From: Thalia democratica
Lineage: Eukaryota
NCBI GenBank assembly: GCA_965202585.1
Contig: OZ241830.1
Coordinates: 58,218,001 to 58,282,000 of the forward strand
Direction of reading: 5' to 3'
DNA length: 64,000 bases
Shown piece by piece: positions 5,445 to 54,600 of this stretch (positions are counted from its first letter, which is position 1; each line of letters begins with the position of its first letter). The translations under genes were made by a program, and so were the position numbers. The notes under the pieces are model-generated. The model had not been told where the DNA came from. It saw only the letters and a program-made list of their open reading frames with translations, and made no database searches.

Positions 5445-8400
5445 ATGTCGTATAAAGAAAAACCCTTCTCAAAAGAGGTGGCAAAGCCAGTACTCTCAGA
5501 ATCAGACAGATTGCGTATAAAGGGTGAAGAGCCTGTCAAGGTTTCCAGAGAAGAATATAAAAAGAAAAAAGAGTTAGAAGAACAAAGAAAGCTTGGAAAT
5601 GCTCCAGCAGAGGTTGATGAAGAAGGAAAGTAAGTGAGATAAAAAATATCAATATAAAAACTATCAACATAAAATATAATATCAATAATTGCTGTATTTG
5701 TTGAATGGAAGTTATCACTTTTTTAGGCTTTGTTTTTTGATAACTAATGTTTAGCTTTTTTATATAATGTCATAGATTTTATGAAATGTAAAAGTACTAT
5801 AAAAGAAAACATGTGTTTTTTAATGAAAAGGTAAGGTAAAAGATGTATAAGAATTTTTATTAAGAATTTATTGAATACTTTTGTTTTTATTTAAACCTAC
5901 ATATTTAAAAATGACAGTTCAAGCATATCAATTATTTTATTTAAAATATAAGAATATTTAAAATCCTTAGATCACAATAAAAAATACTCCCTTTTTTATA
6001 TTTTAAGCACTTGTTTGACAATTTTGTTTTTAGTGATTTTTTTATAAGTCTTTTTATAAAAGTTAAATAATATTTTGGCATAAATAAACTTAATACAAAT
6101 TTGTTTTAAGTAACAACAAGTACTTTTTGAATAAAATAAATTAAGTATGTTTTATTGAACAACAAAAAGAAGCATTTCTCAAAAAACGTATTTAAATTTT
6201 CAATGTTTTAAAATAGAATTTTACAGTTTTTATACAGTTTATACCCAAAGATTTTAAAATACTGTTTATGATCTAGACCAGAGCTGTAAAATGCTAATAG
6301 TTATTGTGCCAAATGAGTACTGAAGGGTACAAACCTTTGTTTGCTTTAAACTAAAATTTCATATCCAAATAATTAAAAAAATTCATTTTAAGAAGTATGA
6401 TCAGACTTTAGGGCTCTTCAATTTATGTAATAAAATTAAAACACCTTAAAAGTTATGGTTTTGAAATTATCATAATAAAACACTACTGTGTCTTAAAGAT
6501 CAAGTTAAGAAAACACTTTAAAATATTTGCTGTAAATATTTGCTGTAAAAATTTTGTTTGTTTTTCAAATATAATTTTCAAGCTAAAAAATACATTGCAT
6601 ACCTACTGTTTGGCGGGCAGGAACCAATGACATGTTGCCTACCTTTATTACAAATAAACAAATTTAAAGTTATGTATATTTTTTAAAGTTTCTATACTTT
6701 GTAAAACTTTCCAATGCCATTGAAAATTGTAGTTAAAGAAGAAAAATAAGTGTGTATTATTAATACCTCTTGTGTATGGCAAATAGTTACTACTACAAGC
6801 ACATCTACAGCAAACTATACTTATTAAATTTTGAAACTTTTTTACATAAAATATATTATTTGTATTTTTAACATATATGTTTAGATTAAAGTTTAAGTAA
6901 AAAAAAGAATACAATCATTCAAGCATTTGTTTTCTTATTTAAATACTAAGCACAAATAAAAGATAATGAAGTGTTTATATATGCTTTTTTTTTTTTTTTT
7001 TTTGATAATTTTAATAAAATAGCTTGTATGTTAGCCTTATAATTTGTTCACATAAAAATGCATGTGGTACCTTTGAAATTTTTTAAGTTGTATATTAGAT
7101 TCAAAATTTTAGACGTTGTATTACACATGTTTATTAAAATTTTAAAATTATGCACATTTAGCATCCTTAGAGTATTTTAAATTTAGTTACAAACTTTAAC
7201 TGTTCAAAATATAGTTTTAATTGTTTGCTAACAAAAGATCCTAGTAAAGTAACTTCACTGGAATATAAATAAAAACAAATTATACAGTAATCTTCCTTTA
7301 TTCTACCAACATATGTTTCTGTGTGTCAACGAATCAACACACTTCAACTGGGTTCTGTAAAAAATAATTACTGTAATAAGAGAATAGAAGCATAGAATAA
7401 AGTAGGCGTATATATGTTTTCATTAAAATAGGATATATTCTACAGATAATAGTTATTAATATGTGAAATACTTAACATTAAATCCGACTGTTATAAAACT
7501 ATATGATATTTGTAATTATTAAGTCTAAAATAAATAAGTAAGCTAAATTACACAACAAAATATATATTTAAAATGAAACAGAAATTATTTAATTTACAAC
7601 ACAGAAACATATGTTGGTAGAATAAAGGAAGATTACTGTATAATTTGTTTTTAGTTACAAACTTTACAACTTTAAAACAAAAGTTTCTATATTTTTGTAA
7701 AACTACCTCTGTGATTTACTAGAAGGGCTTATTAAAGAAACATATAATTAACTAAGCTTTCTATAAAAACTAAAACTTGAAAAAAGTCATATTTTATATA
7801 GATTTATTTTTCTGTTTTACAAATGCAGCCTACGATCTTTTAGAAACTCATTATCTTTTATAATGTATGTGGTTTCTTTGGATAATTTTAAGAAAGTTAA
7901 TTTTAATAAGCCTAGTTGGAGTGACTTTGCAACACAAAAGTTCAAGTTTGTTAGCTTGTGGTGAAAATTAAATAAAAATACTTGAAAATCACTTTTGAAA
8001 AAAATATCGTTTGGTTCGAAGCATTAAATAGGCAGCTTAGGAACAATATTTAAAAAAATAAATTGGCTGATTTTTTTTTAGTTGGTCTGCATTTTTTTTG
8101 TTAAAGCTTCTGTCTAGATTGCTCAACTCAAACAAAATTAGCATTTAAGAGGGACATAGGTTGAATAAATCTGCAATACTTTTTTTATGTACTATGATTC
8201 AATTTTTTTTAAAGGTTCTTGCTTTTAGTTTCAGATAATTTAAGTTACTGAGAATAAAAAAGACAATTCAAAACTATTTTTTAAAAGATAGTTGGAGCAA
8301 TGCAGATTTGTTTAAGCTAAGTTCCTGACATCTAGTAACAAAAAGCTTATCTTCAAAAAATAAATTGTTACTAATGTCACAAAATTTGAGTTTAAATAAA

Positions 8401-11400
8401 TTTTAGTGTTAACCACAAAAAATTAAGTTTACACAACTACTATTTTTAAAAGTAAACAAGTAAAGTTTGTTGTAAAAAGTTTTTTAACTTTTGTTCCTAA
8501 TTCATGTTGCAATGCTTTGTTTCAACTATAAATTATAGAAAATGTTGCATTCTTAACGCAACCGTTGCTGGTTAATTTATTAGCAATATAAACTAAGTTC
8601 ATATTAGAAAAAATTAGAACTTAATATTTTTAAAGGGACATCAACCCCCATATCCCACAGTACATATCCACTGTCCCCTGGTACGTTGATCCCACGCAGA
8701 GAGCGTCACTCAAACACCAGCGCTGTCAGCCGGAGAAGGCCAAGCACTACAGCGGCAACAATGAGTGGTACAACAGGGGAATACCCAGTAACGCGAAAGT
8801 AGCCACCAAGTTTAGGAAGGGCGCGTGTGAGAACTGCGGCTCCATGGGCCACAAGAAGAAGGACTGCCTGGAAGTAAGTATTTTTTATCTATTAGACGTA
8901 TACTTGTTTTTTGATTGATTGCTTTTGGTCTGCTGTTTTGTTTTAGATTTAATTGTTTGATGTTTTTTGACATGTAATAAAATTTTTCAAATTCAATCTT
9001 ATCTACTAATTTATAGTTATACTTTTAGATTTTTAAATAAGCAGATTTGTATTAAAATAAGTAATACACCAACATTTTTTTTAATAAGTGTTTAAGTGAA
9101 ATGTGGTTTTTCTAGACTAAGATTGTTTATAAAAAAATGATTTCGTGAGAAGTGTTTAGTTTAAAACTTGTTTAAAGATTTTGTTGTAAGACATTGAAAT
9201 AATTGTACAACTGTTTTTACAAATCTCTGAATGCAAATACAATTTTAAAACTAACTGCAAGTTTTTGCTTTTAATTATATGAGTGCTGAGCCAACGTTTA
9301 AAACTGCTAAAAATATGTACAATTTTATTTATATGATTGCTATTTAGTCAAGAAAGTCAGTAATTTAGAAATTTTTTTAAATCAGATTTTTTTTTGTAAA
9401 GTTGTAATCTTTCTAACTATATGAATATAATAAATATAATTAAAAAACAAATTGTGCAGTAGTTATTCTTTCCATTAACAACCAACTTGAAGTGTGTTGA
9501 TTTGTTAACACACATAAACATATGTTGGTACAATAAAGGAAGATTACTGTACAATTTGTTTTTATTTATATTCCAGTGAAGTTACTTCACTAGGATCTTT
9601 TGTTAGCAAACGTTTTAACCTATATTTTTGAACAGTTATAATAAATATATGTTTTATGGTTGTTAGTAAATGTAAATTAGCTTTACATTTTTTTATAGTG
9701 AGCTTCTTCACACTTTTTTGACTTTATTATATAGATACGAACATTAAAATAAACTTTTCATATTAAGTTTTAAAATTTACTTCATTGTGTTTTTATTATA
9801 TTTTTACCAACTTTGTTTTATTTTTCACTTAAGTTTTACCAACCATCACTTAATAACTACTAATCTGTAAATTAGATGTTTTAAAATTTTGTATCAAAAA
9901 GCTTTGAACTTTTGAAGAGGGCAATGAATAATCCAACATGACTAATAGATTGTTACGTCATAATACTAAGTTTTTATGCAATTACTAGTTTCGCGCCGAA
10001 TTGACATTACTCTGAAGAAGACTTGGTGCATAAAAAACAATCAAGTCCGAAACACATGTCAAGTAATGTCTGTTTTATGTAGTATATATTTTTCTCTAGT
10101 TTGCCTACAGAGTAAAGGGCACTATAAACCAACTTTAAAACATAACATCATTTTATCTAATTTTTTATACTTTTAGTGTTAAATATCTTAAAACTAAAAA
10201 TATTATCAAAGTAGAAAAATGATTTTTTTTCTAAAACTAAATCCAAGTAGTGTTGTATAAAGTTCTAACTTCATTAAAAGCAAACTTTAATTTATATTGC
10301 ATGTCTCTTGTTTCAGTTTAATTTTTAATTAATTTTAAGTTTATTGTATATAATTTACCTGAATTTTTTTATGTTAGGAAGTGTACTGTTGTTATAAAGC
10401 TACTATGTGTAGGTTTTTGTTTGTTTTAATTTATCAAATTTTTTTGTTGTTTTATTGAAGTTTTCTTCAAAGATTGTTAATTTTCGTTGCTAACAAAACT
10501 ATTGCTTTGTGCTAAATGGTGATTTTTGTTTTAATATCATCTAAAATTTTTAGTAAATAAACATTGTTATTACAATTAGTAAAGGCCATAGGGGGTCCAA
10601 AATTTTTTTTTGGTTATGTATGAAAGCTGAAAGTATAATAAACTACAAGCCAGTTTTTATAGAATATAAAAATTTAATTAATTTCTAAAATAATTTTTTT
10701 TTGTAAAAGTTTCCAATACAAACATATAGACCGCAATTTTTTTCTCGGAAATTTATAAGTTTACCGAAATCTATATTCATTTTTTGAGCTGAAGACCTCA
10801 AATTTCTTGAAAAATTTCAATTACTTATAATTTAAAAGATTTTTAATGTTGCGATTTTAAATTTAAAAAATATAAAATTTTTAGCTAAATTAAAAAAAAA
10901 AATTTTTTTTTTTAACATTTCACTTTTATTAAAAAAAAACTCCTTTAAATCGATTTTAATAACAGCTATATGGACTTCCTGTGAAATTTCGAAGAAAATT
11001 GGTTAAAAAATTAAGAAGATAGACTTTTAGTGAAATAGTCTTTTTTCTCGTTTTTGGTTTGCGCCTTCCTTTTTTTCAAGTGGTTAAAAATGTCTGAAGG
11101 CTCAGATTAAACTCTACAAAATAAGATAAACTTGTAAAGGTCAAGGTGGATCCCCCTATGCCCTTAATCCTGTAGTTACATTTTTAGTCTGATTTTAGGT
11201 TATTTTAAACTTTAAAATAAAGTTATAAATCATCAGTGAAAAAATAAACTTAAACTATTATATAAGCTAAGGAAAATTAAATTTAGAACCATTGTGTTAA
11301 AAAAAGAATATTATTATATAAATAATAACAAAAAAAAAACCTCACAGAGACCGCGCAAAAAAGGCGCCAAATTCACCAACACCAACATCGCTCCCGACGA

Positions 11401-14400
11401 GCTCCAGCAACCAAATTTGAAGCTGGACTTCGAGGGGAAGCGGGACCGGTGGAACGGGTACGACCCCAACAACCACCAGGAAGTCATCGACGAGTACGCC
11501 AAGGTGGAGGTGGCCAAGCAGGTGGTGAAGGCGAACAAGTTGAACAAGGAGTTGCTCAGAGGGGAAATCACCGAAGATAAGGTTGGTTGATCTGTTTGTT
11601 CGTATTTTGAATTTGTTATTTTGGCTGTTGAATTTAGTTTTTATCTAAATTTCTAGAAGTTTATAAAATGATTCGGTTTTTAGTTTGATAATTTAAAAAG
11701 TGTAGTATAATTACTCTTTTTTTTTTTAAATCAAAAATTATAAATATTAAATTTAAAAATATAGAACAAACTTGATATTAAAATTTTAAGCTTTTCTTTG
11801 TTATAGTATTTTTTTCTTGGATTTTCTGAGTTTTTATGATTAAAAGTTGTTTAAGATAAAATAAGGACTTAAAAAAGAGATGGTTTACTCTGTTTTATTA
11901 GTTTACATTAACTTGTTTTACTGTTAGTAATATACATATGCAGAGCTATAGGGAGTAGATTCTAATAACACATTTGGTATGTAGTTAATTATAAAAAGAT
12001 TAAGTTTATGAATAAAATAAAGTAAGATGTCTACCAATTAGTATTAAAAAAGATCTTTCTATAAAAACTATCTTAGCTATCTGTAGCAGCCCCTAATGAA
12101 GTTTGTAGAGTCCCAACTGGTGCTGTAATAATAATGCATCTTGATAAGTAAAGCACAAAAAAGGATTACTATGAATAAATAAAATCAAATTTTTTTGAAG
12201 TAGCACTATATAAGGCTTTCCAAAAAACCTGGATTCCTTGAAAAACCTGGAGTTTGACAGTTTAGGCTAAAAATAATCTGGAGTTTGTGAAAGTTTGAAA
12301 AAAACTAAAAAAAAACCTAGAATTTTAACAACTTTTATATGTTAAATAGGAAATTTTCGATTTGACGCAAAAAATCTATCATATAGATAAAAAATTTGTC
12401 ATCATAATTTTTTTTATTAGAAATCACATTTAAAAAAGCTTTCAAATATTTTTTCAATTTTGACATAATATTTACCACAGTTTTTTACTTTAAACTTGAA
12501 TTTAAACTAAAAATAAACCCAAAAATGTGTACTTTTGAAAACCTGGAGAATATTTGCTAAAAAAATTTTGCAACCCTGTATATAATTTATAAAATAATTT
12601 TCAACATTCTAAACACTATGACGTCACACAGGCGCTGGACGACGACATGCAGGAGGACGAGGACAAGTACGCGGACAAGGTCGACATGCCGGGCACCAAC
12701 TTCGACAGCAAGCACCGCATCACAGTGAGGAACCTGAGGATCAGGGAGGACACCGCAAAGTACCTGAGGAACTTGGACTTGTCATCGGCTCACTACGACC
12801 CCAAGACCAGGTGCCTCGTTTGTTTTATGAATTTAAACTATACGCGAGTAAGCTAAAAATAGTAGAAAAAGTACACATTGCTTTAAAGTATGTTTTAAAC
12901 ATATTTTGGTAAAAACAAATAAAACTGTTTTACTACAAGTAGTTACAATATATTCGCTAAACTTAGCTCTAAGATACTTGTTTTCTTATTGTTTATTTGT
13001 CTTCGATTGTAGTTTAAGTCTAGTTTGTTTAACATTAAACCATCTTTTTCACTTACTTTGTTTTGTGCGAATAAAATAAGCAACATTACTATTATATAAT
13101 AAAAAATATGATTCTTTTTATCGAGCTCGCAGTTGACATTATCTTCTATACCCACATCTATCTGACCCTCAAGCACACTTTCACAGGACGATGCGCATGA
13201 ACCCGTACGAGATGCTGGGCAAGTCGGCGCACGAGCTGGAGTTCGCGGGCGACAACTTCGTGAGGTACACGGGCGACACGCAGGCGATGGCGAACACGCA
13301 GATGTTCGCGTGGCAGGCGGAGGAGAGGGGCCAGAACGTGCACCTGCAGTCGGATCCCACCAGGCTGGAGCTGCTGCAGAGAAATTTCAAAGGTGAAGTT
13401 TAGGTGTTTTGATAAAAATTTATGTGAGTTAGTTAACAATTAGTTTTTTAATATGTTAAAGATCTTGTAGATTAGTTGCGTATTAGAGATCTTTCAGAAC
13501 GCCAGAAAAATGCTTATAATGAGATAAAAAAATTACTGACTTATAATCTACTTATTATAAGAATTAATTTGTTGTTTGTTAAAAAAATTATGAAGTTTTA
13601 TACAATTGTTTGGTTGGCAACATATTTTAAGTCAATTGTGTAACCTCTAGTGCGATTTAGTTAAATTGAACTATAAAAAAATAGTCTATACTCAAATATT
13701 TTTTTAACATTTTTATAACAATGTTTTTCTAAATGTTACCGTAAATATTAGCTTTCTATTTTCTATAAAAACAACTAATTAAGATGGATTATTATTGCAG
13801 TATGTTTTTGATCCTTACAAATTCTAAAATATTTGTGGCTAATTTTTGTAAACTAACCTTTATGAGACTTAAAGTATTAATTAATTAATTAATAGATTAG
13901 TTATATATAAGTCTGTATTTTTCATAAAAGATCTGTGTTGCAAATTTTATAAATTCCTCATGGAAATACCCATCAATTCATTACAGTAATCTTCCTCTCG
14001 ACTACTATTTTTTGAGTTAATAAACTTTAAGTTTAAATTGCGATTTTTCATTTATACTGGTATTTCTTAGGTATGCACTTTTACGAGCAGTTTTTAAAAT
14101 TTAGAAAACTAAATATATAAATTAAAACAACACTCACCTAAACTACTTGAGATCATTGTAGTTGCTTTACTTAATTTTACTTTTTCAATCAATGCAAATA
14201 CTTCAAACAGGAGCCAAAACAAAATTGGAGGAGGAACGCAAAAACCTGCTGGTGGAAAAATACGGAGGAGTAGAATATTTGGAGGCTCCTCCCAAGCAAC
14301 TTTTGTTCGCGCAAACTGAAAATTACATCGAGTATTCCAGAAGTGGAAAAGTCATCAAAGGTTTGTTTCACTGAAAAGTCAATGTAAATTATTTTTAAAC

Positions 14401-16037
14401 TTACTATCAAACTGCTTGTAGAATAATGAACATATCAATGTTAATATTATATCAAAGTTTTGTTAATTGAATTATTTTATTAGAACTTTACTTCCTTAAA
14501 TTTTTGATTATTTTAGTATTTAGTTTAGTTCTTCAATAATTTATTGGCTATTATTTATTAGTTCGTTAATAGTAAAAAGCTATATACATATTCTAAAATA
14601 TAAAAACTATTTATTAAAACAACATTATAATTTTCAATTTTTTTTATATAAAAAAGGCATAATAAAATAAGAGTTAATTGTTTCAATATTTAAAATAAAG
14701 TAGAAAAATAAAACAAACCGAACATCAGGGCAGGAAAAAGCAGTGACGAAGAGCAAGTACAACGAGGATGTGAGGATAAACAACCACACCTGCTGCTGGG
14801 GAAGCTTCTGGAAGGAGGGGTTGTGGGGGTACAAGTGCTGCCAGTCCACCATTAAGATGTCCTACTGCGTCGGATTGAAGAACAAGGAGGAAGACAAGAC
14901 GGAAGAAAAAGAGGAGAACAAAGAGGCGACGTGGCAGCAGAAGGTCGGTTTGAACGAAGTTTCAGATAAGAACGTTGTTGATCGTGTTTATATTGACGAT
15001 GTGGAAAAGTCGCTCGTGGAGCAGCACAGGGAGAAGATGAGCAAGAAGGAGAAGAAGAAACACAAAAAGAGCAAAAAGAAGAAGAGCAAGAAAAGCAAGA
15101 AGAAGAAGAGGAAAAGGGAGAGTTCAAGCAGCGATTCATCTGAGTGGGTTTTAAACTAATATTTTGAAAAAAAAAATGTTTAAAAGTTTAACTTAAAGCT
15201 GTATCATTTGTTTATTGTACTGATGAGCTCTTTAGAGCGAAACTTCTTTTGCATTGGAAAATAACATAAAAAAATTACATTATAAAAGTTAACTATTAAT
15301 ATAAATTGCAGCAGCAATTCAGACGAAGAGCCAGCCTCGAAAAAATTAAAGAAAAATAAAAACGTGAATTTGGATGATATGAGCAAGGAAGAGAGAGACG
15401 AGCTTGTTAACAGAATAATGAAGAGAGAAAAAGCGAGACAGTAAGTTTGTTTTATGATTTATTTGTTATTTAAAGGTTAACATGAATACATAAATAAAGT
15501 ATAATATACAATTCACTTTTTTTTTACCAATTGTTGTTTAAATATATTAATATTTTGTTTAATTAAAAGTATCAATATTTAAATAAAAATTACAATTATA
15601 CCATTTGTTGTGATCTAATAGTTTAACTAATTCTAATTATTTTTTTAGACAACCTGTTTTTAAATACTTAGAATTAGACAAGTTTAACATCATTATTTTT
15701 ACACTCAATGTGCAGTACAGTATGTTTCTTAAATAGATGAGAAAAAGTTAGATTTTTATTATAAATAACTTTGAAAAAACTAAACAAAGTTCAAAATTTT
15801 AACTTTTTAAAAACCACTGTCATAGTTTATTACAAAAAATTATAACTTCCACATTCAACCACTTTTATCCACACCAGGAGACGAGTTGATATGATGAGCT
15901 CATTGGACGAGAGGGATCGTCCGTACAATTCGAACAGGGGAGACGCGGAAGCCGCCATGGAACCCACTGAAGCGGAAATGGAGGCGTACCGAAAAATGCA
16001 GAAGAACAAAGACGACCCCATGTACGGGCTGTGTTGA
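5445..16037 (+). CDS. SLU7: Pre-mRNA splicing factor SLU7, 9 or 10 coding exons
   Basis: Exons: 5445-5629, 8636-8873, 11348-11581, 12632-12810, 13187-13392, 14211-14360, 14729-15143 (possible internal 66-nt intron 14944-15009), 15312-15440, 15878-16037. All junctions are GT-AG with matching phase. The translation has SLU7 hallmarks: [31 protein letters not shown], zinc knuckle [61 protein letters not shown] and C-terminal [15 protein letters not shown]. Confidence 0.97.
7198..7348 (-). repeat. Intronic repeat containing a decayed hammerhead; inverted partner of 9484-9637
   Basis: Reverse-complement homology to 9484-9637, with a partial third copy at 7596-7650. The minus strand reads GTGTGTTGA-TTCG-TTGACACAC-A-GAAA-CATAT-GTT. 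Confidence 0.8.
9484..9637 (+). repeat. Inverted partner of 7198-7348
   Basis: Direct reverse-complement alignment across about 150 bp. Confidence 0.8.
10003..10070 (+). ncRNA. Type I hammerhead ribozyme motif, near intact, SLU7 intron 2, sense strand
   Basis: Stem I is GACATTACT/AGTAATGTC with one extra A. Core CTGAAGA at 10012-18. Stem II is GACTTGG/TCAAGTC with an A.C mismatch at the core-closing pair. GAAA at 10049-52, 2-bp stem III with palindrome ACATGT, and GTC triplet (cleavage after 10060). Confidence 0.72.
10584..11163. mobile_element. Kolobok-like non-autonomous DNA transposon
   Basis: TIRs GGCCATAGGGGG/CCCCCTATGCCC flanked by TAAA and TTAA. The body is homologous to 4420-5059. 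Confidence 0.65.
12212..12578. mobile_element. Probable hAT-like MITE in SLU7 intron 3
   Basis: Repeated aaaaacctgga motifs, and an end caaccctg typical of CAGGGTTG termini. Confidence 0.45.
15211..15270 (+). ncRNA. Hammerhead core with decayed stem III in the 168-nt SLU7 intron 15144-15311
   Basis: CTGATGA-GCTC-TTTA-GAGC-GAAAC at 15220-15243 is a textbook core plus stem II. Upstream TTTATTGTA partly pairs with TAACATAAA. The NUH triplet is lost. Confidence 0.55.
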
Positions 16038-34600: not shown

Positions 34601-37600
34601 TTTACAAGCAACTGGTATTTATAAAGTAAAAATTTTGAAGTTTTCAAGTAAAAAAACAATGCAATACAAATTTAACAACTTTTTACAATAAAAAATAATT
34701 CTAGAAAAAAAATATTAAATACTTTAACAGTTTTTATAAAACTTTATAAAAGTAGCATGAGTTTTATACAACCACGGTCCAACCTGCTCCAGACGTTATG
34801 ATTTCTTTGCTTCTGACGTTGGAAACGATTTTAACTATCTTGGAAGTGTGGGACTGCACGCTGTACTGCACGCTACCCGTGTTTAAATCGAGAACCACTA
34901 TGTTCCCACTTTCAGTGCCGCCTATCAGCAGTATCGAGTAACCGTACCTGTTGCATAAAACGTTAGTTTTTTTAAAGAAAATATGTAAGACTTTGCACTT
35001 GAAAAGTCTATGTATAAGTTTGATAAATAAAAAAATTGAGAATTTAGTGCATTATAAATAGCGCAACTATAGTATAATTCAACCTAGTTTTTCAATAATT
35101 AAACATACTTATTTAGGACGTGAAGTATTATTTTTTTAACAAAAAACACTTGCACTCACGAAAGTTTTTTTACGATGTGTTAAAGTACCAGAAGGACTCT
35201 AAATATTAAAGTATAGAGTCGAAAGATAAAAAAAAATCTAAAAAGTATTGAACGAAGACCTAACTTAAAAAAAAGAGCAAGCTGATTTCTAAAATCAATT
35301 TAAAACTCTAACTTGAATTTTCTCTTAATGTCTTCGTTTTTAACACCCAGCCTAATTTGATTCCAGGTATCATTCAACTCAGCTTCATCTACTATGTTCT
35401 CGTAAAGCTCCAAACAGGTAAGTTTTTCATCTAAAACATTAAATAATTAATGTAAATATTTGTTTTTTTTCAGTCAACATCAGTTGTCGCTTTGTATAAA
35501 AACAAGCATATGCTTGTGGTAAAAAATTTCAAATTTTTTTACAATTAAAAAAGTAAATGAATTATAATACAGAGACAAAAAATTGTATCATTAGAAAAAT
35601 AAATTATGACTGATGAACAAAGCATATGAGTAAGCTATCTTCCGACAGAACTTTTTTTTTTGATTATATAAAATTCAATTTAAAACAGGCAATAAGGCAT
35701 AGTCTTAAAACTTGACTGCATACTATCTATAAAAAAATCTATACTTATTGTGTAAACAAACAATAGTTTACATTCGCTTCAGATTTAAAGCCTTCAAGTC
35801 ATCATCAGACTAACCTAAACTTTTTGTCTTAGGAAAACTTGAAGCATAAAACTTTTAGTTCGGAAAATATTGTTAATATTTGTTAATATTTGTTTACACT
35901 ATGCACATATGTCGCTTTACTTTATTTATTAAGCATAGATAACTACCAACCAAGCTTAAAACACACTATCGAATAAAACACTTTATACGTGGATGATTAG
36001 CAGCTAATTAGTAACAGAAACTATACTTTATTTTGACGAAAAATTGAAGTGTAAAAATTTAAGTCCGAAACATATGAAAACAATTGTTTTGTTTCTACCA
36101 CAAAAACAAAGTATACATCACTTTAAACCAAATTTAAATAAAAGAACATAACATCTAATAAAAGTTTTACGTACAAAAAATCAGAAACCAATAAGCAACA
36201 GAAACCTCCATCAAATTTGAAAAGAAACTCGACGCCGGCAGGGCTCTTCAGCGTGCTGGCCCGATAAAGCCCCCCGTCACCGTAAACAGCATAAATCGAT
36301 TCCAGTGGCAGGCAGTAGACTGCGTCGACGATCTCGTTGTCATCACAACCGGCTTTCTGATCGCAAGGTGGCAGCATCGTGGTGAGTATGGTGCCGTCTA
36401 GCGGAGAAACGAGTCGCACCGATCCGTCGTTTCCGCAACACAAAACTCGGTCGACCAACTGAAAAGGATTTAGAAATTTTTGTTGTTTTTTTTGATAAAG
36501 ACAAAAACAAGTATAATAAGCAGCTTTTTTCAAGTACTATTATACATTAGCTTTTATTACTTAGAACTGTTTCGTATTGATTCAAATTTATTACATGTGA
36601 CAAAAGTTAAATAATTTATGCACAAAGGTTTAATTTATTTGTAAATACAGTTGTAAAAAAAAAACAGCAAAGTATTTATCAATAAAAACTATCGAAGTAT
36701 TTACATTTCTATATTCGTACATTTCCATTTTTTTCACTGAATAACTGTGAAAAAAAATTTATTGTATATGTGTTATTAATTTAGCACAGAGAAACGTGCG
36801 TAAATTCAATAAATCAAGTAATTTTCAAGATGTTGTTATTGCTTTATTCCAACGAGCTTGTTTTTCGCATCTTTATTATAAAGTTTATTATAAGTTGGTA
36901 AATTTTGAACATTTATTAGCAAGATTTAAGTCTAAAAATTTGCAAAAAAATTTTTGAACTAATATTAATAAGAAAATTAACTATATTGTTTATTAAACGA
37001 CAAAAAAAAATACGCTCAAAAGGTTTGGTCCAAGGACCTGGTGTACAAAAAAAACCTTTCGGTTATCGAGTCATACACCAGAACAGTTTAACGTCATGCC
37101 CAGGACATATAATCAACTCTTTTCTCTAATTACCCAATCGTAGTAAAAATTTGATGAAGATGCGTGACTTTCCATATGTCAACAAATTTGCTGGAGTAAG
37201 TAAAAAGTTTGTTGCTGTCAGAACTTGCGTACAATCCCAACAACTTGTCATCTGCTTCTATTCTATTAATTATGCTTTGTTATTAGAAAACTGCGAAAAA
37301 AACTTACTTCAACACGTAAATAGAAAATCACAGAAATTTTTGGCGCGTTATAGCCTTTTTAAGATAATGTAAGGATTATAAGCATAAAATTGAAAGATTA
37401 AGAAAAAAAATGCAAAGTGATTTATTTCAAAACCAAAACTTTAAAATCAAACTCACAAGTCAACCTCGTCAGAACTTTCTAAACTCCAAACTCTGATAGT
37501 TTTATCATAAGATGCAGACATTATGTATGGACCCTAGCAAAAAACTATATCTATTAAACTTTGTTATTTTACGCAGAAAATGTAAGTTTTTTTGAAAACG

Positions 37601-48600: not shown

Positions 48601-51600
48601 AAATTAATTAAAAGAAAGCTACCGACCGATGGTAAGGGTTAGGGCAACAGTGATAGTAAAAATAAAATAAAAAACAAATAAAAATTACTAATAAGAAAAA
48701 ATTAATAAAAAAAAAACAAAAAAAAAACAAGTTACCAACAGAAGGTAAGGGTTAGTGGTAACAGTGAAAGTAAAAAAAAAATTTAACTAATAAAATTTTT
48801 TTATAAAAATTAAAAACTAATGAAAAAAATATTAAAAATAAGTTTCAACCCGTGCAAAAATTTATATGTGCAAAAAATTACCCTTTGTGCAAACATATCT
48901 TTGTGCAATTTAGTTCCCTCGTGCAATTTTGTCCACTTGTGCAAATTTGACACCTACCCTGTAATTTTAAGTTTTTTATAGTGTTTATCTTTAATTTTCC
49001 ACTTTTTTGTGTGTCTTTAAAGTGTAAGTGGCCCATGTTTTGATGACTTGGTCCAGTGTTGGACAATAAACTACAAATAATAATAAAATATTTTATTATT
49101 GTAATAAAACAAAAATTGAAATTCTTTACAGAACTCTGGAGAAACAACTGAAACTTATAGAGAAAGTGTTCTTTTAAAAAATCAACTTTCTAAAAGTAAG
49201 TTTAAATATGATCTGCAACATATTTTTATGTAAAAATTATTAAATAAATTATGAGATTTTAGAGTGTAGTTGATACAGATAATTGAAAAAAATAGAGGTT
49301 GTAAATATTTTTAAGGTACTTTTAATAAGAATTAGTTAAATAACTGTAATTACATACTTAATTGTTATTATTTTTAGTTTTTTATTTTACATGTATATTT
49401 TATTAACTTAATTTGGTTAAAAATTTTGATTAATTTTAAATGATTTTAAATTCTTTTAGCACAACCATTTCGTAATCAAGGAAACACCACTTCAAACCAA
49501 TTAACAAAAAACCGAAAGTATGACAAGCCTTGGTTGAAAACTACTAGACACCAAAAAAGCAAACAAGGTTTTTTCAAAAAACTTTATTTTGTTTTTGTGT
49601 TAGCTTATTTTTAACATTTAAGTTAAAATAATGTCCTAAACAGTATTTAGCTTCTTCATTTTTTACTTAAAGCTTATAGCCATATGCTTTGGTATCAAAC
49701 ATGTATGTGAAACTCTAACATATATAAATAAACAGTAAAGTGAGAAATACCACAAAAGAGTTCCTAGCCAAATATTTCTTTTAAGAATAAAGCTAAGAAC
49801 ATAAACATATTGTTAGAAATTTTAAACATAGTAAAAAGAATGTTAGTCTGTATTGTCGACTATTAGCAAATCGTTACATTTTGTATAATTTTAGTTTTAG
49901 TAGCTTAATTTTCACTAATAATAGTTTTCAGACTTGTCAAAAACCGCAGATGATGTTTTGTTACAGCATAAAGCATCTGAAACGCAACCACAGCAAATTG
50001 AAAATACTGAAGTTATTTCCATAGAAGAAAAACGTAAGAAAACTTTTGCTAAAGAAAAACAGTTTTCAAGCTCAAAGATTTTTGGTAAAAAGAATTACAA
50101 AAGACAGTATGATGAAAATGAACTTAATTGCAAAGATGGTAGTTTGAAAAATTAGTTTTTGGTTTTCTACATTTTAAAAAACTAAGCTTTACTTTTGAAC
50201 AAATTTAGTTAATATTTTTAATCATTTTAATTTAAATATAGAATACTAATTTTTAAGTCTGAAAGAAATTTTATTAAATTTTTAAAAATTACTTTGAAGA
50301 TGTTGAGAATCAATCTCAAGCTTTAACTTCTGTGAAAAAGCTTTCGGCCAAAAAATCTAAAAAGCACAAACAACAGTTACTAAAGTAAGTTAAATTGTGT
50401 AAAACATTCGTTTTTCAATATAATTTAAATTGAAAAAATTATGTATATATAAAAAGAATTGAATTCGACAAACTTAATCAACTTCCACAGAGCCCACTAG
50501 AAGGGCTTTAAAATAGTTTATTTCAAATTGTTAAATTCAAAAAACAGCAGAATATTACAAGCAATTTTATTGTTTCTATGAAACAATTGTACTGTTTTTT
50601 GAATTCGACAATTCGCACTAAACTTGTATATATGTATATTTATTAATAAAACACAACATTTTACAAATACAATTGTTTCTCTATTCTGTTAAACAGAACA
50701 GAACAGATCTATATATATATATTTATTCATTTGATTATATAAAAAAACAATAGTTTTATACGACCGTTTCGTATATGTGACATATTACCTCATATACTCA
50801 TTGGTAAATTAAAGTTTATTAAATGTTGAAAAGAAATTTAGAACTTGATAGTTTTATAATTATTATGACGTATTAATAATGAAGGTTTTTGTACAGTAAG
50901 TTAAGTTTGAAAAAATACGCTGAACTAGTTAGTTTGAAAATTTATGCATTTTGAAAAGTTTGGAAAGGTTGTATTAGAAAAATGTTTTAAACTGTATTAG
51001 AAAAAATGTTTTAAACTATTCGTCTTCGCTGCTTTGATTTAGTTTTTTAGTTAGTTTTAATTTTGCTAAAAAAGTTTTTTTTTTTTGGTTATGGATGCAT
51101 ATAAATTGTCTTTCGCTTTTCTTGTTTATTGTTATTTTCTTATCTGATTTTTCGATTTCTATTTTTTCTAAGTTACAAAGTTTGCAGCCGAATTTGGTAT
51201 TGATAAGAACGTAACACTAAACAAGAAAAGCGAAAGACAAAACATATGCATCCATTATCAAAAATACTTTTTTATAAAAATTAAAACCAACTAAATATTA
51301 AAACAAAATAAAATTGAAGCGGCAAACACGAGTATTTTATAACATTTTCCCAAAAGTCTAAAAAAATTTTTTCTAATAGCTTAAAACATTTTTCCAAAAC
51401 AACCTTTCTAAACTTTCCTAAAAAGCATAAATTAACAATCACAGCGTATTATTTCAAATTCAGCTAATCGTACAATAAACTGTACCATTACTACGTCACA
51501 ATTATTATAAAAAAATTAAAATCAAATTTCTGTTTACTATTATAATAAACTGTAACTTACTGAGGATCACATGAAATTTTACATTTCATGTGTGAAACAG

Positions 51601-54600
51601 CTGTATAAATTATAGTTTTTATGTAATTAGATAAATAATTAGCTCCAATTTAATTTGTCGAGCACTATCGACCAGAACTTTTTATAAAACCTTTAATATA
51701 TATATATATATATATTTATATATAGTTACTTTATCATGTGTAATGCGTATAGTAAATAAATAAATTTACTGACTTAAATTGTATTGTGGTTTAACAATGT
51801 GTTTTAAAAAAGAAAATGAATTTTATATTAAATTATATGTATTGGTACTAAAATTAAAGTAATGCTAAATGTTTCCTGTTTAATTTTTTATTGGTTTTAT
51901 CTATATACTTAACTTTTGTAATTACTTGAACAGTTCAGTAATAAATATGTACCCTTTTTGAACTGGGAAAGCTTAAGAAATTTTGAAATTTAAAACAGAT
52001 ATCATAATTAAAATAAGTTACTTAGTTAAAAACAAGGTAAACTTTATGGAGTGCAAAAACTTATATAGCTGAGCTAATAAGTTTATGATAACTCAAAACA
52101 ATTATCTTTTTACTAGTTCTAAGTATGTACAAACTTGCTTGTTGCTTTTACATTTGATTTATCTTCATAATTGACAACTTTTTTTAAATTTAAGATTTAA
52201 AGTTGATATACTAGTCATACAAGTGTAATTAATATAATATATTTTTATAATCCATACTTTAAAAACAGTCAACATATATTTTACCCATAATTACTATAAA
52301 ACTAAATTGTTACAGCTCTGTTTTGTTTTTTGTACAATTACTAACAGAAATGACTACTCAATTCCAAGTTATTTTTTTTAAATTCCGGATAAATCTTTTT
52401 TATTTTAGGAAAAAGCTGTTAGAATTAGAAAAATCTTCAGAAATAGTTGATATTGGTTCTGGAAGTTCCAGTAATGAAGACGATGTCATTGAAATATGTG
52501 AAGATTTTGACGAGTTAAAGAATGAAGGTGTCCTTGTAAGTTACTTTTTATAATTTTATGCATGCACGTTTTTTACGTTGTTTAAGATATTATGGGCATA
52601 GGAGAGTCCAGCATGTTTATTAAAAAAAAAACATTGACTTGTTTAGAACTATGAAGTATGAATCAGTTTTTATATATTATGATAGTTTTTATTAAGTTTT
52701 TGAAAAAATAAGCACTTTTCTTAGAGTTTCAAGATGTTTTATACATATAAAAAATTGAATTTAAATTTTTTTATTGGTATAATATGTTCTAATGACAAGT
52801 TTAGGAGTAGTTGTCTAAAATATTGTATGTTTATCTGAAAACTTTCAATATTTTTTCTTCAAGTTTTCATACAATCATTAACGTTTTATAAAGTTAATAA
52901 CATTTTAAGCTGTTCAGGCAACTTTTGGTTTTTGTAAAACTTTATAACAGTTAAATTATTTTTTATTGAGATAAATTTTTAAGACACTTACATCATATGT
53001 TTTATTATTTAGTAAGTTGAAGTATAAAGTATTTATAAATACACTATCACATGTCATGGTAACTTTAACTATTATTTGATGGTTTGAATTTAATAAATAA
53101 GTGAAAGTTCTGTGTTTTATAGAAAACCACAAAAAGTTTATTTCGAATTCATGATGTTTTAGATCCGCTAAGAAACTTATATTCGTATTTATATAACTTA
53201 AACAAATTATTATTATTTTTTTCTTTTCTTGTAGAACCCCCCTAAAGGAGGAATTCACATCAAAAGAAGAGCTGAAACAAGGACAGAACAAATAAAACTT
53301 GATCTCAATATTTCAAAGTAATAAATAACTAAAGTTACAAAAATTTTTAAGTAATTAAAATATAATGTATTCCATCCCATAACATTTGGTAACCTTTGAT
53401 AACAGCTTTATTTTACTAAGGGTAAATAATTTTAGGTTCTATTTCTTATTTTGTTTTTGATTTCTATCCAGGTTTTTAGTTCAGCCAGTATTTTTTACTT
53501 TTATTTATCTAAAAAGTATCAACAGTTAGTTTACTTATTTCAAAACTCTTACGTTTGTGTTTACTTAAATATTTTAATAACTGTTTTTTGGAAAAAAGAG
53601 CAAAATTCCTAAAATAAATTTGATGAAAGTATAATTTTTTCTAATATTATTCTTTAAACAATAGAAAATGGTTTTAGAACTATATTTATTTAAAACTCTA
53701 AAAATTTATAAATGAAATTTTCGAAAAAATCTTAAAGTAAAAGTTGATACACTGTCTATTATCAGAATACTACTCAAACAATTCCAAAAAATTATTATTG
53801 ATACTCATATAAGATAAAAATTACCTTATAGTTTTACTAGAATATTTTTTAATCATAAAATACTATACATATAATCAAACTTTAACTTTGTAACTGAATT
53901 TTTTAGATAAACGTAACACAGATTCAAACTTTTATTTTTTAATTTCGGTCGAAAATTTTGAAACTAAACCAAATACGATAAAAAAACTGTGATTTTTTTT
54001 TATAACATATAAATTCCATTATAGGGCTATTAAGTTTTTTTAATCCTAATGTTTACGAATCCTTAATATTTTTGCCAAGCAAGTTTAAAATTCGTTGCTA
54101 ACAAGCTTCACATCCAAAACTTACTCAATCAACCTTGAAACTAGTTTTAATTTAGCTGCAGAATACATATTACAAATAAACCTTCGTAAATTATCTTAAC
54201 ACTTCAGCATTGTATGGTTTACTGTTAGTTTATACAGATTAAAAAAAGTAGTCAATGCTCTTGTAAAGACAAAAACTTTGTAAATTAAGTCTTGTTGTTT
54301 AAAAATAATTGTAAGTCTCAATAGACTAAGCTATTTTATAACTTTTAACGCTGTTAATAATTTAACTGTAATGCACTGTATAATCACAATAAGTTTTAAG
54401 TTAAAAGAAAAACTTTTTTTTTATCAAATGAGCTCAACTTTTTTCAGAATTAACTAAAATGCTTGTTTTAAACAAATTTATTATTTATACTTCAGGTTTT
54501 TTGACAAACTGGGAGGGGCACTGGATAGTGATAGACCGAGTTCGAGAAACTCAAATTTCAATAACAAGTCTTATGATTACTTAGATGATATTGAAAGCGC

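Follow-up and report, generated by a model that had tools for sequence, protein, structure and literature searches.

A hammerhead motif in intron 2 of SLU7 in Thalia democratica is most probably a decaying relic of a dispersed retroelement

What is a hammerhead ribozyme motif doing in an intron of the SLU7 gene, and does it cut the pre-mRNA in which it is embedded? The motif occupies positions 10003-10070 of a 64,000-nucleotide stretch of Thalia democratica DNA (the whole stretch analyzed, hereafter the window, in whose numbering all positions are given), and a sequence-only reading had drawn attention to it. Here we place the motif in its gene, in the repeat family that surrounds it and among the hammerhead systems already described. 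Our analysis indicates that it is most probably the neutrally decaying remnant of a retroelement, of the type of Penelope-like elements (PLEs) or animal retrozymes, that inserted into SLU7 intron 2. As such, it would be one more fossil in a very large and already described class of retroelement hammerheads. The case also illustrates that apparent 'defects' in such a motif need to be checked against sibling copies before they are read as damage or as regulation.

The host gene runs along the forward strand. Coding exon 1 (5445-5630, ends approximate) was recognized by its translation, which reads on into exon 2 (8637-8873); the latter encodes a CCHC zinc knuckle and ends at a GAA/GTAAGT donor, with the boundary after 8873. 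Exon 3 (11348-11579) is where the Slu7 domain begins, and exons matching this domain are found at 11423-14805 on the same strand. A 1109-nt contig assembled from a marine metatranscriptome is made up of 8690-8873, 11348-11579, 12630-12807 and 13184-13393. Because this contig joins 8873 directly to 11348, the intron that holds the motif, intron 2, spans 8874-11347, with GT and AG at its two ends, and is spliced out. Translations, Slu7-domain exons and the RNA contig thus bear out the original placement of the motif in SLU7 intron 2, in sense orientation.

The RNA evidence consists of assembled contigs, with parts of the stretch present in only two marine metatranscriptome runs. Coverage by these contigs excludes 10001-10200 and RNA ends are not visible in them; they are consequently neutral on cleavage, speaking neither for nor against it. 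Over 8001-14000 the runs contain spliced SLU7 mRNA from this organism or a close relative, with a few differences, pointing to a planktonic animal. At 9401-9600, 10601-10800, 11001-11200 and 12201-12600, in SLU7 introns 2 and 3, the summed contig depth is 10^4 to 10^6, which marks these four stretches as very high-copy repeats of other families.

Within the motif, the parts of a hammerhead follow one another on the forward strand. The 5′ strand of helix I (10003-10011) pairs over 9 bp with its 3′ strand (10062-10070), with pair probabilities of 0.96-1.0. The core box CUGAAGA (C3-A9) lies at 10012-10018 and the core box GAAA (G12-A15.1) at 10049-10052, both as read from the sequence and the family alignment. 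Between them, the helix II hairpin (10020-10047) pairs GACUUGG at 10020-10026 with UCAAGUC at 10041-10047 around a loop at 10027-10040, giving a helix of 7-8 bp that starts with G10020-C10047. The helix III region, ACACAUGU at 10052-10059, has 2 bp (A10052-U10059 and C10053-G10058) closed by an ACAU tetraloop. Cleavage is predicted between C10060 (H17) and A10061, directly after the GUC at 10058-10060.

Compared with the canonical hammerhead, the core is complete: C3, U4, G5, A6, N7, G8 and A9, then G12, A13 and A14, the A15.1-U16.1 pair, and C10060 as H17. The claim that all core nucleotides and a GUC site are present is therefore correct. Two canonical pairs are missing. Where the 10.1-11.1 pair should lie beside A9 and G12, an extra A (A10019, between A9 and helix II) faces an extra C (C10048, between helix II and G12), and both sit before the first G-C pair. 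Where a 1.1-2.1 pair should follow the cleavage site directly, A10061 is an unpaired extra base and pairing resumes with A10062-U10011.

These features can be judged against many siblings. The motif lies in a copy of an old dispersed repeat at about 9939-10145 on the forward strand (ends approximate, from BLAST extents and alignments), and the part common to most siblings, about 10002-10085, is mostly the hammerhead plus about 15 nt. When the 802-Mb genome was searched by BLAST with a 161-bp query, 18 siblings were found at 72-83 % identity; a 29-nt helix II pattern allowing up to 3 mismatches had 23 matches, against 0 for a reversed control. A covariance model (R1), built from the family alignment of 29 copies (A1), matched at least 145 genomic sites, out of 150 candidates that were scored. 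Since copies were recruited by similarity to helix II, the high conservation of this helix is biased. Covariation across the family is weak (0.150 versus 0.132 in shuffles, with 28 of 500 shuffles reaching the observed value), and helix II shows a few compensatory changes, from G-C to A-U and from A-U to G-C.

R1 also detects three more decayed relatives in the window, at 35751-35822 on the minus strand (E value 2e-6), 35814-35887 on the plus strand (8e-6) and 36019-36096 on the plus strand (1e-9). The first and second of these are inverted relative to each other, head to head, and no long reading frame lies nearby.

In its majority layout the family has, in order, CUGAGGA, A, helix II of 10 bp around an AUAAA loop, C, GAAAC, ACGU, GU, A, A and helix I, and the SLU7 copy, 88 % identical to this majority, is among the best preserved. 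An A is found at the position of 10019 in 25 of the 29 aligned copies, its combination with the facing C in 19 of 29, and the extra A after the cleavage site, equivalent to 10061, again in 25 of 29. The A.C pair, the extra A and the 2-bp stem III listed earlier as defects thus exist, but the first two are common to most siblings and cannot be counted as damage. Nor can the third: a 2-bp helix III is normal for retroelement hammerheads of the dimer type (PMC4209133), and its presence is therefore no damage to the SLU7 copy.

Other changes are private to the SLU7 copy. A G>A at 10035, a 3-nt insertion at 10036-10038 and a C>A at 10039 have cost helix II its top three pairs and created what had been described as loop II. 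A G>A at 10056, within a CpG, has turned the 8-nt palindrome ACACGUGU into a sequence that is not palindromic in the required register. Most siblings have A at H17, that is, a GUA site, which an A>C at 10060 has converted to GUC. Finally, a G>A at 10066 has replaced the U.G wobble of the family's helix I by a U-A pair. The SLU7 copy is thus a member of a repeat family, its odd features are those of most siblings, and it carries private damage. Judging from these sequence relationships, the hammerhead is borne by the repeat; it did not evolve in SLU7 and is not a host ribozyme.

Does the complete core nevertheless point to selection on this copy? The family palindrome is intact in 6 of the 29 copies, and a seventh copy, L071, has a different one, ACAAUUGU. 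All core letters are kept in only two of the 29, the SLU7 copy and L071. By our own estimate, all 13 letters would survive about 22 % divergence in about 4 % of copies, which corresponds to roughly one of the 29. The observed two are near the neutral expectation for a divergence of about 20 %, so the intactness of the SLU7 copy is best explained by luck together with the way in which it was picked. L071, the best-preserved sibling (G000:C10:12886968-12887045; L071:1477-1553, minus strand), has CUGAUGA, its palindrome intact, a GUA site, and G.U where the SLU7 copy has A.C; the changes in its helix II, from G-C to A-U and from G.U to A-U, keep the pairing.

Hammerheads of a similar build are known from PLEs, whose terminal repeats carry minimal type I hammerheads (Cervera & de la Pena 2014, PMC4209133). 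These have a large helix II, one additional nucleotide that separates A9 from G10.1, then a G10.1-C11.1 pair, a 2-bp helix III in which 15.2-16.2 and loop 3 are palindromic, and a high sequence variability; they occur mostly solo, with some opposite-strand pairs 100-700 bp apart (PMC4209133). The SLU7-motif family resembles them in its core boxes, its long helix II, the extra nucleotide between A9 and G10.1 and the G-C pair that opens helix II (A10019 and G10020-C10047 in the SLU7 copy), in the 2-bp helix III with a palindromic loop of its majority form, and in its many divergent copies, solo or in inverted pairs, that make up the R1 matches. It differs from them in that the extra C, an addition to the PLE layout, faces the extra A as a 1x1 A.C mismatch at the base of helix II, and in having an unpaired A after the cleavage site and a long helix I (8-9 bp). 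In addition, no flanking reverse-transcriptase reading frame was found in 41 family loci, and no autonomous element bearing this hammerhead in a terminal repeat was found.

With no reverse transcriptase beside the sibling copies, it is layout and insertion style that suggest, by analogy, a link between the family and PLEs. As to insertion style, locus L008 has an inverted repeat of 419 bp at 87 % identity and locus L054 a shorter one (146 bp at 70 %), and at L054, L058 and L064 a reverse-complement hammerhead copy lies directly upstream. The genome contains at least 69 matches to GIY-YIG endonuclease, many of them in head-to-head pairs 1-3 kb apart. Such head-to-head pairing is an insertion pattern typical of PLEs. 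Examples of GIY-YIG pairs are C1:110353667(-)/110355667(+) and C6:71392237(-)/71393162(+), and several of the matches sit inside open frames of 400-900 aa.

Animal non-LTR retrozymes are a second point of comparison. Like the SLU7-motif family, they are dispersed, do not code for protein and carry type I hammerheads in which helix III is weak; a mismatched base of helix II has also been described, U.U in the axolotl retrozyme hammerhead HHR_Amex2 (Cervera & de la Pena 2020, PMC7229834). As a rule, retrozymes are built of tandem units and yield circular RNAs, whereas the SLU7 copy is solo and about 200 bp long. A 2026 preprint derives animal retrozymes from PLE terminal repeats and describes vertebrate retrozymes as depleted from introns (bioRxiv 10.64898/2026.07.22.740005); the SLU7 copy, by contrast, is intronic.

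Under the explanation that we favor, an old non-autonomous element of the PLE or animal-retrozyme kind would have inserted in sense orientation into SLU7 intron 2. It would have brought with it a type I 'minimal' hammerhead, of the sort with which such elements process their own multimeric or tandem RNA. Helix III of these ribozymes is too short to form within a single molecule, and two of them must pair through a palindrome to build it. PLE hammerhead dimers are reportedly the subject of work by Lunse, Weinberg and Breaker in RNA Biol.

General hammerhead models do not recover this type of motif. The Rfam hammerhead models gave no match to the SLU7 motif, either at gathering score or, over 901 bases, at E<=10, and the sole trace was a meaningless 13-bit match to RAGATH-1-hammerhead. 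This blank result says little, because the same models also miss the best natural sibling and a young hammerhead family represented in the window at 51560. More generally, Rfam hammerhead models miss the long-helix-II subtype, so that such a hammerhead may be present even where an Rfam search draws a blank. The 51560 family has the same order of parts as the SLU7-motif family and quite different stem sequences, and this like layout on different stems provides outside support for the structure. R1 does not detect the 51560 hammerhead; the layout is common to both families, and homology is not demonstrated.

Of the alternatives to a neutral relic, the one that survives best is an intronic hammerhead of weak activity, severing part of the SLU7 pre-mRNA either by itself, with a chaperone's help, or together with a sibling's RNA in trans. 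We regard it as very unlikely. Its intronic precedent, and the model behind the earlier proposal, are HH9 and HH10 of Rfam, intronic hammerheads conserved among amniotes that de la Pena together with Garcia-Robles reportedly described in 2010. In both of these, helix III is stable, the monomer cleaves, and distant species have kept the ribozyme at orthologous sites. The SLU7 motif is like them in lying on the sense strand of an intron of a protein-coding gene, but it has no stable helix III in the monomer, and the one second organism compared is about 98.7 % identical.

Folding bears on the same point. For the 68-nt motif the best fold has an energy of -17.5 kcal/mol (z-score -3.8), which none of 200 shuffles equals. 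The hammerhead secondary structure comes to -11.6 kcal/mol, 5.9 kcal/mol above the best fold, which lengthens helix I by pairing U4, G5 and A6 with U16.1, C17 and the extra A. In the monomer, the pair probability of helix III is 0.03-0.04, and in a homodimer cofold of 10003-10070 only helix I was swapped, with helix III not formed between the molecules. Calling the hammerhead 'near-intact' was overstated, given the absence of helix III in the monomer and the weakness of the hammerhead fold.

Set beside these values, the invariant core letters, the GUC site, the stable helices I and II, the sense orientation and the good preservation of the SLU7 copy count for weak activity, and in vivo PLE hammerheads possibly depend on host factors (PMC4209133). 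Even intact PLE hammerheads, however, are inactive as monomers and weakly active as dimers, and their cleavage in vitro is poor and mostly seen at Mg2+ levels outside the physiological range (PMC4209133). In the SLU7 copy, moreover, the base directly 3′ of the cleavage site is unpaired, and spliced SLU7 mRNA exists. At 10056 the palindrome on which dimer formation depends is interrupted, and the R1 scan of the window found no second family copy within the SLU7 gene, the nearest relatives being at 35.7-36.1 kb; cutting of SLU7 pre-mRNA is therefore unlikely. The proposal that the hammerhead severs this pre-mRNA is accordingly very unlikely to hold, its palindrome being lost and its gene offering no dimer partner. 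There is a small chance that the family layout is a working hammerhead variant of PLEs, and the SLU7 copy, its core being complete, might then still cleave SLU7 pre-mRNA at a low level, aided by host factors or by sibling RNAs in trans. If the family layout does cleave, the hammerhead core would be more tolerant near 10.1/11.1 and 1.1 than is known so far. For the SLU7 copy itself, we infer neither meaningful cleavage nor a role in SLU7.

An even slimmer prospect is that the relic has been taken over for a role other than cleavage, for example as a structure of helices I and II that affects SLU7 splicing or protein binding. The local fold is indeed unusually stable for its composition, as its z-score indicates, but this stability is inherited from the ribozyme design, and over the longer interval 9955-10085 the stability is unremarkable (z -0.45). 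The hammerhead-carrying insertion is present also in contigs of the second organism, one of which spans 9863-10252. There, 5 of 390 positions differ, differences are as frequent as in the neighboring intron, and one of them, T10007G, breaks a helix I pair.

It is scarcely conceivable that the motif, in AT-rich DNA, resembles a hammerhead by chance and lacks any such ancestry. Taken alone, the loose core pattern is not rare in the window (4 matches versus 1.5 expected), and an Rfam hammerhead match is absent. Yet homology within the family extends over the entire motif, several of its members have full 8-nt helix III palindromes, helix II has compensatory changes in both directions, and the unrelated 51560 family repeats the layout on other stems. 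Stems and family evidence together thus rule chance out.

Last and least credible is the alternative-fold switch, also suggested in the sequence-only reading, in which 9970-9980 would pair with loop II (10027-10038) and turn the ribozyme on or off: the complementarity is there, as GTTTTTATGCA at 9970-9980 and TGCATAAAAAAC at 10027-10038 match over 11 bases with one bulge (5 T against 6 A), but the switch helix is rejected on its pair probabilities, since in a 131-nt context any such pair has a probability of at most 0.0001 and helices I and II stay at 0.96-1.0, while the loop letters come from the 3-nt insertion private to the SLU7 copy and the upstream ATGCA is absent from siblings.

The second hammerhead-shaped motif of the window lies on the forward strand at 51560-51617, within 50724-51727. 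It consists of CUGAGGA, a 10-bp helix II, GAAAC, AGCU and GUA, with the palindrome ACAGCUGU and a 12-bp helix I, and stands in an inverted arrangement with an older minus-strand copy at 50724-51203. Its family is young and abundant, with 1326 first-look candidates and scored copies that are 93-96 % identical. The base of helix II varies by copy: it is A.C in the SLU7-motif family, G.U in L071, and U.U or G.U in subfamilies of the 51560 family, whose cleavage site is likewise variable, GUA or GUU.
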